Below, in pieces: positions 797 to 5,847 of a stretch of DNA of 64,000 nucleotides. The position numbers were made by a program, and so were the translations under genes. Each line of letters starts with the position of its first letter. Within the stretch, counting starts at the first letter, position 1. The notes below the pieces were generated by a model. The model saw only the letters and a program-made list of their open reading frames with translations. It was not told the origin of the DNA and made no database searches. This stretch comes from Mantamonas sphyraenae STR306. Taxonomy: Eukaryota; Protista; CRuMs. The stretch covers positions 124,001 through 188,000 of the forward strand of contig JAPMXV010000016.1 in the NCBI GenBank assembly GCA_026936335.1. The letters run 5' to 3'.

Positions 797-830
797 GATG
801 CCAGATTGGCAGTGGTTGTGTTGCACCTCG

Positions 831-1516
831 CTATGTCGATGTGTTGCGGGTTTGGCCCAGCAGGGGCAGGCTTGTGTGCCACATGCTCAGACGGTTGAGC
901 ATGATGAGCAAACGCGTGCTGGCTAAGGTGGTGTCCACACAGACGCCTTCACCCTGGCTGTGCATGCGGTCAAACAACAACGCCGTGTCCAGGTGCAGCA
1001 AGTCCGGATCGAGCCACACGTACTTTTCCTCCACGGTCTCTTCCCGACCGCACAGCAACACGGCGTCGCTTGCAAGTGTACTCCCTCGCAGGAGCAAGGC
1101 ATGCGTGAGGTCTTCCAATTCCCCCTCCACGGCGTCTACCAGTCCCTTGGATTTGCCCTTTATCCTCAACGCGCGCGTCACAATCCCTGTCATGGCCTGT
1201 GTCAGTGCTCCGCGTGTGCAGAATAGGTGCAAAGATTTTCCCGTGTGTGTGTACCTCTCTGTTGAGCCTGTGCAACCAAATCACGCTCACAAGCCACCCA
1301 GCAGCCACGGCCACCAAGGTTGTTTTGAAGATCGGGCGCCGCACGGACGCGTACAACGCCGTCGTCGTCCTTTTGCCGTGTCTTGGCAAAGCGCACAAGC
1401 ATGCTGGTGGGTAGATTAGCCTGGCTGACCTGACACCTGCGCATGGGCAGTGCCAGGAGACGGCCAAGTTCGATCGTCGCACTATTCGCTCGTGTGTGTG
1501 TTGAGACCACGCTCAT
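831..1516 (-). CDS. YlxR/RnpM (DUF448)-like RNA-binding protein with a C-terminal extension, 2 exons
   Basis: Exon 1516-1255 reads PMRRCQVSQ..LVRF..PDLQNNLGGRGCWV..R..VAQA, which matches the DUF448 pattern PxRxCxV/LIRF/PD..KLPGRGxWV. A GTACAC...CAG intron spans 1254-1187. Exon 1186-831 reads IVTRALRI..LVDAVEGEL. Stop is TAG. Confidence 0.7.
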
Positions 1517-1743: not shown

Positions 1744-2940
1744 TCAGACGGTGTTGCCGCCGGTTCGCAGCGAAACAAGGAAAAGCAGGGATGTCACGGC
1801 GATGGAGGCAATTTCAGTCACCAGCTTGGCGGTGAGTGTGATGCCTAGTACGCGTACACCATGCACGCGAGCGATGATGCCTTCCACCACAGCCTGCACC
1901 TCTCTGCCGACACCAGCCTCGCATCCGCTGCGCACTCCGCTCCAGCGCGCAAGCGACTCTGCCAATCGCTGACTGTGTGTGTGACCACGAGTTGTGGGTA
2001 CCAAGATGAACGTGAGCCAAATCATGCACAGCGGGACGATGATGATGAGAACCAGCGGGTTGCTGTAGCCAAACACCACGAGCAACACGGCTAGGATCAG
2101 CGACAGCGTCGTGTTGGCCAGGACTCCACCGAGTATCATCCCTCTGAGGTTGTTGTAGGTTGTTAGCATGCTCATGGTCTGCTCGTGCTCGTCGTTGAGC
2201 CGTTGAAGCTCCGCGAGGCTCACCGTCGCCCACGCATCCACACGCTCCCTCAGCACGCCGAGGGAGTCGTTGACTGCAAACATGGTTGCCATCACCGAGG
2301 AAATCACCACGAGAATGGCCATAGACATCCAGACGGCTCCAACGACGGTGAAGATGATTGCCACGACAAACCCGCTTCCCCAATGGCGGATATGCCAAAT
2401 CAACACCATCTCGCTTGTTCCAGGAGGATCTGCCATCATGTTGGCAAACACAGTGACGTACGAGGCCACCAGCTGCACAGCACAAACGCCAACAATCGCC
2501 GCCCACCTCCACAATTTCTTTGGGAGCCGCTCCTGGACGAACTTGCCGTCCATTGAGCTGAAAATGCGCAGCCACCAGTTTGTGGGTTGGGTTAAGAACC
2601 AGATGGTGTGAATCGTGAGAGTGCCTAGGTTGAACAGGACGTTGATGGTCGCGAGCATCGCGTCGTCGTTTGTCAGCACCACCAACGGGCTTGTGGCCAC
2701 GCCATACGCACACATGAGCATGCCTGACCAAGAAATAACAGTGCAAGCTATCCACGCCACCGAGTAGACGTCGCTGAAGGATTCACCGGCCCTGCGCTGC
2801 ACCAGCATCACGCGAAACGCGGTGTCGAACGCCCGGACAACGAGCGGCAAGCGTTCGTACTCCTCCAGCTCCATGACATCCCGAAAAGGGTTCGCTTCGG
2901 GCACCTCCGTCAGCTCCTCTTCCGGAGTGACACGGGCCAT
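1744..2940 (-). CDS. 7-TM protein, gustatory-receptor-like (GRL/7TMIC superfamily)
   Basis: Intronless, ~398 aa from MARVTPEE, with seven hydrophobic segments. It has a long helical TM4-5 loop (LQRLNDEHEQTMSMLTTYNNLRG) and a split C-terminal TM7 (GVRVLGITLT-AKLVTEIASIAVTSLLFLVSL). Confidence 0.62.
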   Translation of the reverse strand: MARVTPEEELTEVPEANPFRDVMELEEYERLPLVVRAFDTAFRVMLVQRRAGESFSDVYSVAWIACTVISWSGMLMCAYGVATSPLVVLTNDDAMLATINVLFNLGTLTIHTIWFLTQPTNWWLRIFSSMDGKFVQERLPKKLWRWAAIVGVCAVQLVASYVTVFANMMADPPGTSEMVLIWHIRHWGSGFVVAIIFTVVGAVWMSMAILVVISSVMATMFAVNDSLGVLRERVDAWATVSLAELQRLNDEHEQTMSMLTTYNNLRGMILGGVLANTTLSLILAVLLVVFGYSNPLVLIIIVPLCMIWLTFILVPTTRGHTHSQRLAESLARWSGVRSGCEAGVGREVQAVVEGIIARVHGVRVLGITLTAKLVTEIASIAVTSLLFLVSLRTGGNTV

Positions 2941-3066: not shown

Positions 3067-5628
3067 TCAATGCCACGACTGTCGAAAGTGTGTGCTGCTG
3101 CGCTGAAACGCAATGTTTGTCTTTGCGATGCTGGGTCCCCTCGATTGGAGCAACTTGATAATCTTTGCCTGTGCCTTTGGATACGGTTGCGCCACATTGT
3201 TGCGCTCCTTCGCCTGTTGCGTGTCGGTGTCCACACGCATGTCCTGCAGCTGCGACACAATCTCTGCAAACCGGTTGCGTTCCTCGGCCTGCCGCGATGC
3301 CTTGCTCATGCGCTTCTGCGTGCGGGAGCTAGGTTCGTCGCCATTTGTGCTCCCGCTGCTGTACCCGCTGTTGGTGTTGTTTCGTCCCTTGCTGTTGCTG
3401 CGCTTGCCCTTGCGCTTGGTATTGGATCCACGCCTGCTGCTTGCGCTGCTCGACGAAGCATAGCCCACGCTGCTGTGGCCATCCACACTGTCCCTGTCAT
3501 TCATACTTCCTCCATCGCGATCGTAGCCAGCAGAGCTTGTTTGCGGACGCGTGCGGCCGTTGCTACGTCCTCGCGTGCCCATACTGGTCGACGACCTCGC
3601 GGATGCGAGTGACGTTCGCCTGCTGCTCCCACTGCCACTGGCGCTGATGGGTCGTGACGTCGATCCCATGCTGCTACTGCTCTCGCGCCGTCCGTTCGAC
3701 CCGTACCGCGGTGCCGCACTGCCCGGACGCGTCCGCCCGCTGCTTCGTTGCAACGCACGGCCCGTGCGAGACGCAGACGCCGTGCTTCCACTCCCGCGCG
3801 ACGTGCCCGACGACCGTTTTGCACGTCGCGTGTACCTTTCCTCATCGCTGTCCTCCGCCTCTTCCGACACATCGTCGTCCTCCCTGTCCTTGCCTTTGCC
3901 CACGTTGTTCCCACCCGAGTCGGACTTTCCCTGCCCAGAGCCGTCCCCCTGGTGGCCATGTACACCCTCACGCATACTCTCTTGCGCCTGGGCCAGTGTG
4001 CGCATGATATCCTTCTCCCAGAAGCGTTTGCCAATGTCCATCTGCACGTCGCCCAACACCACCGCTTGGCGGTCAAAGCTGACCAGAATGTCCTCTGCCT
4101 TCCACAGGATGATTTCCAGGATGAATACGTTGTCGCGCACCGTGCCGTCTTCGTTCTTTGTGTTCACCACGTGGTTCTTTGTGTGGCACCCCTGCCGCAA
4201 CAGGCCCGATCCGCCGGAAGCAATCGCCGGTGCTCCGCAGCACTGGTACACGCCTGTGTTTTTGCCCTCCTCCATCACCGCCTCCTTGGGATGATAGCTG
4301 CAGTGGCCCAGCTGGTTGGCCGTAAACCGTTTCCCGCACACGTTGCACTGCAGCGAGTGCAACAGGCCCCACAGCCGCCACTTGATACTGCGCCAACTCA
4401 GGCCCTCTGCACGCAACCCCATCAGATAACTATTTACATCCCACTTGCTGTCACGCGTGTGCCGAGCTACTAGGTTGCCGTGGAAATCAATGTGTGCCAC
4501 CGCCTTGCGGCACACCTTCCACGACGCCTGCTCCTCGGTGAACAGTTCGCCACACAGGCCACACCGTTGCAAGTCGTTGAATGGACTTTGCTCAGCAAAC
4601 ATCTCTTCAATCTTGCGCATGTGCAGCTTGCCCAGCACCTTGTCCCGCTTGTCGCGCACGTACTCCAGCTGCACGTCTGTAAACAGCGCCGCCAGCCGGC
4701 CCAGCAGCTTGTTGTTGAGGCAATTGAGGTCGATGGGCAACTTGATGATGTCGTTGAGATTGTCGTGCACATACTGCAAACACTCGGCCACCAGCGAGTC
4801 CATTTGCAGAAACTCCGACGAGATCAGGATCGACACCACAGACGTCACCTCTGCGCAATGCGTGTGTCGTGTGTATGTGTCGTGTGTCCAGTGTCAGCCG
4901 CCGTGTCTTGGTCAACGAAAAAACCCACAATGGAAGGAGAAAAGACCCGCCCGCGCCAAAATCGCAGTGGCAGGAAAACGGTCGGCGCGAGACCCGCTCT
5001 CCGGTCGACGTGGCCACGGACAAACAACACTGATGTGGTTGGGAGGGGGGGGGGGGGGGGGGGGGCGAGAGACACACAGAGCGGTGGGAAACAACGTACC
5101 CAGTTGCGGTGGCTGCTCCTTGTTATGTACATACAACATAAGCCACTCAAAGATGTTGATGTCGCAGTGGACGCTGATGTCCACGTCCTGGCCGTGGGTG
5201 TGAGACGTCAGATAGCCCGTAAAGTACTTCATCTCGCGCATGAGCAGGGCACGTCCGCATGTAAAGTTTCGGTTGACGCCACGCGCCTCGTCGCACACGT
5301 GGATCACAATCTCTTGGTCTGCGTCCGTCGTGGACGCCCCGCTGCCCGTTCGGCTCTCTCCGCTTCGCCCTTGCGCACGCTTGGTGCCATTCTTGCGTCC
5401 TTCTGCACCTGTGTTTGTGTTTCCCTTGGTTCCTTCGCCCCATGCGGTCCGTTTGGTGTGCTGTTGGCTCCCAACGAGGCCGTTGCCGCTGCTGCTGCTG
5501 CTTCCACCGCCGCTGCTTCCGGTTGCCTGCACACGCAGTTTGCGACGTCGTTTCTTGTCCTTGCGCCTTTCATGGTCCAGATGCCGCGCCACCTGAGCCA
5601 CGATCTGCTGGGCTGCAGTCGTCGACAT
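3067..5628 (-). CDS. SANBR: SANT and BTB domain regulator (KIAA1841/DUF3342 family), 2 exons
   Basis: IVIHVCDEAR..FTC..LLMREMKYF..DISVHCDINIFEWLM, then intron 5099-4851, then VVSILISSEFLQMDSLV..CLQYVH. Cys/His motifs (CSYHP, YQCCG) are followed by an S/R-rich tail. Confidence 0.85.
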
Positions 5629-5847
5629 GAGGGTGGAGGCGCCGCTGGAGAACAAGTTGTTTTGGCAAACCCCGGGGGTAGTGCCATCCACATGCACACA
5701 TGCGCATGAACACACACCAACACACTTGGCAATCACAAGTGAGGCATTGGAGAAGGGTGTGAATCCGCGTCATGGAGATCGGCAAAGTGGCGGCCAATGC
5801 CCGCACTGCTCGGGGCAAGGGAACGCAGAGCGAGACGAGAGAGAGAG

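Follow-up and report, generated by a model that had tools for sequence, protein, structure and literature searches.

A nuclear, intron-split YlxR-family gene of alphaproteobacterial type in Mantamonas sphyraenae, a candidate accessory subunit of a mitochondrial RNase P

The assembly of Mantamonas sphyraenae, a marine protist from a deep branch of the eukaryotes, comprises 25,061,354 bases in 78 contigs with about 59% GC, and it was published as a nuclear assembly of 25.06 Mb, 78 contigs and 59.19% GC (PMC10492846). We analysed a 64,000-nucleotide stretch of contig C16, hereafter the window. On its minus strand lies a gene of the YlxR (DUF448) family, with its ATG at 1516, a TAG stop at 833-831 and two exons encoding 205 amino acids (Table 1). 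The gene is single copy and was the sole YlxR match in a profile search of the assembly. The next gene on this strand follows closely: its likely ATG lies at 796, only 34 nt (window 797-830) beyond the YlxR stop, and it opens with a stretch resembling a signal peptide. Directly upstream is an intronless 398-aa multi-pass membrane ORF without a Pfam match (window 1744-2940, minus strand).

Table 1. Features of the YlxR gene in the window, and the RnpA ORF encoded elsewhere in the genome.
Feature	Coordinates	Strand	Remarks
Exon 1	1255..1516	-	262 nt (87 codons and one further nt); its frame ranks first of six under the host codon model
N-terminal extension, 23 aa	1448..1516	-	S/T-rich (six S or T), net +1; possible weak presequence
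YlxR core, residues 24-87	1256..1447	-	PF04296 32.7 bits, PRK09190 40.7 bits, alignment; net +5
Intron	1187..1254	-	68 nt, phase-1, GT-AG; in-frame TGA at 1204-1202
CTGAC branch-point-like motif	1201..1205	-	Distance of its A: 5 nt to AG 1197, 15 nt to AG 1187
Exon 2	831..1186	-	356 nt (2 nt, 117 codons and TAG); codon model; single copy
Final YlxR helix plus linker helix (exon-2 residues 1-25)	1110..1184	-	In register with alphaproteobacterial homologues; 10.3 bits, P 0.0005
C-terminal 92 residues	834..1109	-	At the position of the L7Ae/YlxQ-like domain of PRK09190 proteins; acidic, diverged beyond assignment
Helix lined up with the bacterial end helix	914-888	-	From alignments
RnpA ORF	C30, about 274250-274729 (= L002:1438-1917)	+	Bacterial-type RnpA

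The neighbours of the YlxR gene are eukaryotic genes, spliced ones among them. The upstream neighbour but one is a SANBR/KIAA1841-like BTB gene (window 3067-5736, minus strand), which also gave a weak CHORD-like match. Its BTB_SANBR domain is split over two exons (profile positions 1-70 and 76-97), and its 249-nt GT-AG intron, at 5099-4851, contains a CTGAC motif. A bacterial contaminant, or a misassembled bacterial piece, could be suspected from the history of the assembly, as the cells were grown in xenic culture and contaminant sequence led to the removal of >60% of long reads (PMC10492846). However, contig C16 opens with telomeric repeats and the SANBR-type domain is interrupted by an intron, so the locus is nuclear. 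Moreover, the YlxR gene itself has an intron and host codon use and lies outside the rimP-nusA-ylxR-infB operon, with neither nusA nor infB adjoining it. The genomic context rules out contamination, and the chance that it accounts for the gene is negligible.

The sequence-only reading had joined two ORF fragments across a 68-nt GT-AG intron, and its coordinates were borne out, both the register with homologues and the codon model backing the junction. Searches of the spliced model used each exon separately, and junction scores were likewise computed for each side on its own. For the junction, each candidate downstream peptide was anchored at the profile position that exon 1 reaches. Anchored in this way, AG 1187 scored 10.3 bits (P 0.0005 relative to 2000 host fragments), compared with -0.9 for AG 1208, -9.8 for AG 1197 and -14.4 for the retained intron. 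In register with the bacterial homologues, 1254-1187 ranked first among 96 pairs of a GT or GC donor with an AG acceptor. We also trained a codon-position Markov model on long host ORFs from beyond the tested region (71 in all), which gave exon 2 +17.4 bits when read in the proposed frame and -45.6 and -81.4 when read in the other two. In the stretch that is open in both frames, the proposed frame scored +9.1 bits and that of AG 1197 -30.4, a difference of about 40 bits. The frame shift through the upstream AG, which had been named as one possible objection to the model, is disfavoured on both measures. An AG very near the branch point is usually skipped in splicing, and AG 1187 is favoured over AG 1197 because the branch-like A at 1202 is only 5 nt from the latter. 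In other predicted host introns, CTRAC lies at least 23 nt from the AG. A blind intron scan of the host was set aside as too noisy.

On this evidence, the junction 1254-1187 is very probably correct. A different structure would be an unspliced 104-aa YlxR ending at 1202 followed by a separate ORF from ATG 1193, the frameshifting AG 1197, a GC-AG intron at 1267-1197, or a gene in decay. Several features lend some weight to these variants: the model rests on sequence rather than transcripts, the donor lacks a +5 G, most predicted host introns are longer than this one, the codon model gives exon 1 a mildly negative score (-5.1 bits), and the GC-AG pair, ranked second, trails by only 5.8 bits. However, the retained intron and AG 1197 with the 1254 donor fall far below the anchored score of AG 1187, two genes 8 nt apart are unlikely, and the profile match of exon 1 ends at position 54 of 75, with exon 2 providing the missing helix without a gap. 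Even the GC-AG variant would leave the protein nearly the same, three residues shorter. Another structure, or decay, is thus improbable.

Exon 1 alone matched PF04296 with 32.7 bits (cut-off 26.9; E 6.8e-8) over profile positions 1-54 of 75, in agreement with the DUF448 identity proposed earlier. The motifs quoted in support of that identity are all present in the protein; however, RLLIMLNRL is not its end, since it spans residues 179-187 and 18 residues follow. The best NCBIfam match of exon 1 was PRK09190 (40.7 bits). The whole-protein score of that family, 184 bits, was not reached, as exon 2 had no match and the gap is too large to close. The RnpM equivalog model NF047356 gave 20 bits, below its cut-off of 80, which none of 201 Pseudomonadota genomes reached. 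The core keeps R26, C28, R42, D62 and G69-R70-G71-x-W73. Among these, R26, R42 and the stretch G69-R-G-C-W73 correspond to R10, R26, G45 and R46 of a Bacillus sequence, which are invariant columns, and the cleft arginines and the GRGA(W/Y)-type motif of YlxR are named in PMC11622646. The core is basic (net +5) and has an 8-residue loop insertion. Searches of PDB sequences returned chance matches only. Sequence comparison confirms the gene as a real YlxR/DUF448 family member of the alphaproteobacterial type.

Its closest counterparts are the alphaproteobacterial YlxR-L7Ae fusions of PRK09190 (e.g. the Rhodospirillaceae-like P0003), with up to 47% identity over the domain. Shared with them are a start of the form RRCx[VA][TS] instead of CxxC, the [PA]D...GRGxW motif, a linker helix in register and a long C-terminal part, with 137 residues from GRG to the stop in Mantamonas, a median of 158 in Alphaproteobacteria and about 48 in other phyla. 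In contrast to those proteins, the Mantamonas gene is nuclear, intron-split and outside operons, and carries the loop insertion. Bacillus subtilis RnpM (YlxR) has the same YlxR domain and cleft residues, its K11, T15 and D53 having conservative counterparts in R27, S31 and E77 of Mantamonas (PMC10853771). It differs in being a stand-alone protein of about 90 aa that binds Bacillus P RNA at P3/P15/P15.1 (PMC10853771), and its V13 is a Q in Mantamonas.

The bacterial relatives carry a YlxQ/L7Ae-like second domain, and such a part had been expected here. It is present in the bacterial proteins but undetectable in the Mantamonas protein: exon 2 past its first 25 residues showed no significant similarity to anything found, L7Ae included. 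Shuffling residues 26 onward left the score no lower (P 0.37), and a fold search with two low-confidence structure models of exon 2 (pLDDT 38 and 53) gave no match. The C-terminal part is shorter than in PRK09190 proteins and has a net charge of -4 vs a median of +6 (range -1 to +12). We infer that it is a decayed L7Ae domain, a relic with which its position, its length and the aligned end helix would fit.

The ancestry of the domain was assessed with a set of 111 alphaproteobacterial loci (ten of them picked for likeness to the query), 35 from Bacillota, 26 from Actinomycetota and 25 from cyanobacteria; deltaproteobacterial-type fusions lay outside the sampled groups. Against group profiles of 20 sequences, exon 1 scored 43.3 bits for Alphaproteobacteria, 26.3 for Actinomycetota, 16.6 for Bacillota and 6.1 for cyanobacteria. 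The RRCx[VA][TS] motif was present in 53 of the 111 alphaproteobacterial rows and in 0 of the 86 others, and [PA]D..GRGxW in 78 and 1, respectively. In a maximum likelihood tree, computed from 58 columns with a simple model and one eukaryotic sequence, the protein occupied a long branch (1.01) inside the alphaproteobacterial group, near Rhodospirillales (95/85). A placement test that left out the rows picked by likeness assigned a weight of 0.92-0.98 to positions inside Alphaproteobacteria across four resamples. Placement on the alphaproteobacterial stem cost 8-11 log-likelihood units relative to positions within the class (p-AU 0.009-0.11), and some positions outside the class were not rejected in every resample. 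One-clade tests on a 100-row quick tree rejected nothing, the free search scoring worse than each constrained one. One repeat artefact aside, the best matches among 1.84 billion representatives were of the alphaproteobacterial type. Among the groups sampled, these comparisons make an alphaproteobacterial ancestry of the YlxR domain well supported. Additionally, the long branch, the host-like codon use and the intron indicate a long residence in the host. The sequence-only reading had gone further and called the gene endosymbiont-derived. Its alphaproteobacterial type and nesting hold, but with 58 columns and a single eukaryote, endosymbiotic and later transfer are indistinguishable in the tree.

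Searches for a eukaryotic YlxR homologue found none, reaching close kin only or being swamped by bacteria. Word-index searches with each exon returned nothing, the first being too short to reach 200-aa proteins, and exact look-ups found no record. The top phmmer match, P0001 from Arabidopsis suecica, was an artefact of 17 repeated short matches. Metagenome scans, one per exon, yielded no relative, and in a protein atlas exon 1 led to bacterial DUF448 clusters only and exon 2 to nothing. Some algal database entries are labelled as YlxR domain proteins and are expected to be of the plastid type or contaminants. Literature searches, weak in themselves, found no nuclear or mitochondrial case of YlxR, DUF448, COG2740 or RnpM. 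The sole organelle case found there is the cyanobacterial-type YlxR of Paulinella chromatophore genomes, where homologues of Synechocystis Ssr1238 are kept in an organelle context (PMC11622646). Those proteins are of the cyanobacterial four-cysteine type, of non-mitochondrial ancestry and encoded in the organelle genome (PMC11622646), whereas the Mantamonas gene is nuclear. In another cyanobacterium, Acaryochloris, plasmid pREB6 (NC_009931.1) carries a second ylxR outside the nusA-infB operon, in addition to the chromosomal copy.

A search for RnpA and rnpB had been suggested as a check on a link to RNase P, and both parts were located. The genome search revealed a nuclear bacterial-type RnpA on contig C30 (274313-274711; E 1.8e-17), while the available part of the mitogenome paper reports that the Mantamonas mitogenome encodes rnpB and, in that part, does not mention RnpA (bioRxiv 10.1101/2024.01.30.577968). 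The mitogenome is not part of the nuclear assembly, and rnpB is absent there. The RnpA protein (159 aa, no intron needed) exceeds the Pfam and TIGR00188 cut-offs, and its first 21 residues form a basic extension (net +4). Its ATG and the TGA of an upstream GPAT-like ORF overlap (ATGA; L002:1438-1441). Such an overlap is unusual for nuclear genes and implies a promoter within the coding sequence upstream, one transcript for both ORFs or a different start. A PRORP search of the assembly gave no match, but it was weak and detected no control sequence. RimP, NusA and RbfA were not found in the assembly with searches of limited sensitivity, which diverged copies could escape; the genome contains two IF-2 family genes.

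The N-terminal extension adds little about the destination of the protein. Its moment is 0.36, and the same crude charge filter was passed by 43% of long host ORF starts. Bacterial homologues have extensions of similar length (median 19 aa) but acidic (net -2). The shift in charge goes in the direction expected for a presequence, but no clear presequence is recognisable, and the N-terminus is uninformative on the mitochondrial targeting suggested in the sequence-only reading.

The co-occurrence of YlxR with a nuclear RnpA and a mitochondrial rnpB, together with the binding of P RNA by YlxR in Bacillus and Synechocystis, points to a role in mitochondrial RNase P. RnpM of Bacillus is a P RNA-binding protein that reduces RNase P activity, and its family is present in Alphaproteobacteria and absent from Gammaproteobacteria (PMC10853771). 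For Synechocystis YlxR (Ssr1238), P RNA is the top ligand, RnpA co-purifies, and binding extends to E. coli P RNA (PMC11622646). In the literature searched, we found no report of P RNA binding by alphaproteobacterial YlxR-L7Ae proteins. We propose, with somewhat less than even confidence, that the protein stems from the endosymbiont and serves a bacterial-type mitochondrial RNase P as an accessory subunit. Its gene would have passed from the mitochondrial endosymbiont to the nucleus, and the protein would be imported into mitochondria. There, its cleft would bind the mitochondrion-encoded P RNA beside RnpA and either stabilise that RNA or tune tRNA 5' processing, while the decayed L7Ae-like domain would probably no longer bind RNA.

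Two other readings of the protein deserve weighing, and we regard each as unlikely. A mitochondrial YlxR might serve translation or general RNA handling, at the mitoribosome or in initiation, rather than RNase P. The bacterial rimP-nusA-ylxR-infB operon suggests as much, as do the rRNA that co-purifies with RnpM (PMC10853771), the ribosomal proteins co-precipitated by cyanobacterial YlxR (PMC11622646) and the two IF-2 family genes. However, in both phyla tested the foremost specific ligand is P RNA, and it is RnpA that was found in the assembly while the limited searches for RimP, NusA and RbfA found none. Mantamonas is also a bacterivorous flagellate, and the mantamonad lineage could have acquired the gene later, by lateral transfer from alphaproteobacterial prey; the protein would then act in the cytosol, in the nucleus or, secondarily, in mitochondria. 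Such a transfer would suit the feeding habit of the host, the nesting inside the class near Rhodospirillales with the stem disfavoured, and the lack of a homologue in any other eukaryote found. Yet true mitochondrial genes often nest within Alphaproteobacteria in single-gene trees, the signal here comes from few columns, a long branch and a simple model, and clade tests on the full tree rejected nothing. Furthermore, shared inheritance is the simpler account of why YlxR was kept alongside two ancestral parts of RNase P that are themselves rare.

What makes the proposed accessory subunit interesting is that YlxR, RnpA and rnpB form a matched set in one organism. Andalucia godoyi likewise combines a nuclear RnpA with a mitochondrial rnpB, a two-part bacterial RNase P in mitochondria, but no YlxR or DUF448 is named in the available portion of its text and supplement (PMC7050145). 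More broadly, and as a tentative idea that we hold with some doubt, YlxR/RnpM may have belonged to the RNase P of the first mitochondria as a third subunit that has so far gone unrecognised, and it would survive as a nuclear gene where mitochondrial rnpB and nuclear RnpA persist. The last common ancestor of eukaryotes would thus have had a regulated bacterial-type mitochondrial RNase P, and YlxR should track rnpB and RnpA across protists. By analogy, alphaproteobacterial YlxR-L7Ae proteins might also act on RNase P, with the L7Ae part dispensable. Mantamonas mitochondria are among the most bacteria-like known. A nuclear RnpM would extend the short list of bacterial features that mitochondria have retained from their ancestor, and the literature searched names no earlier candidate for a modulator of a mitochondrial ribozyme RNase P.
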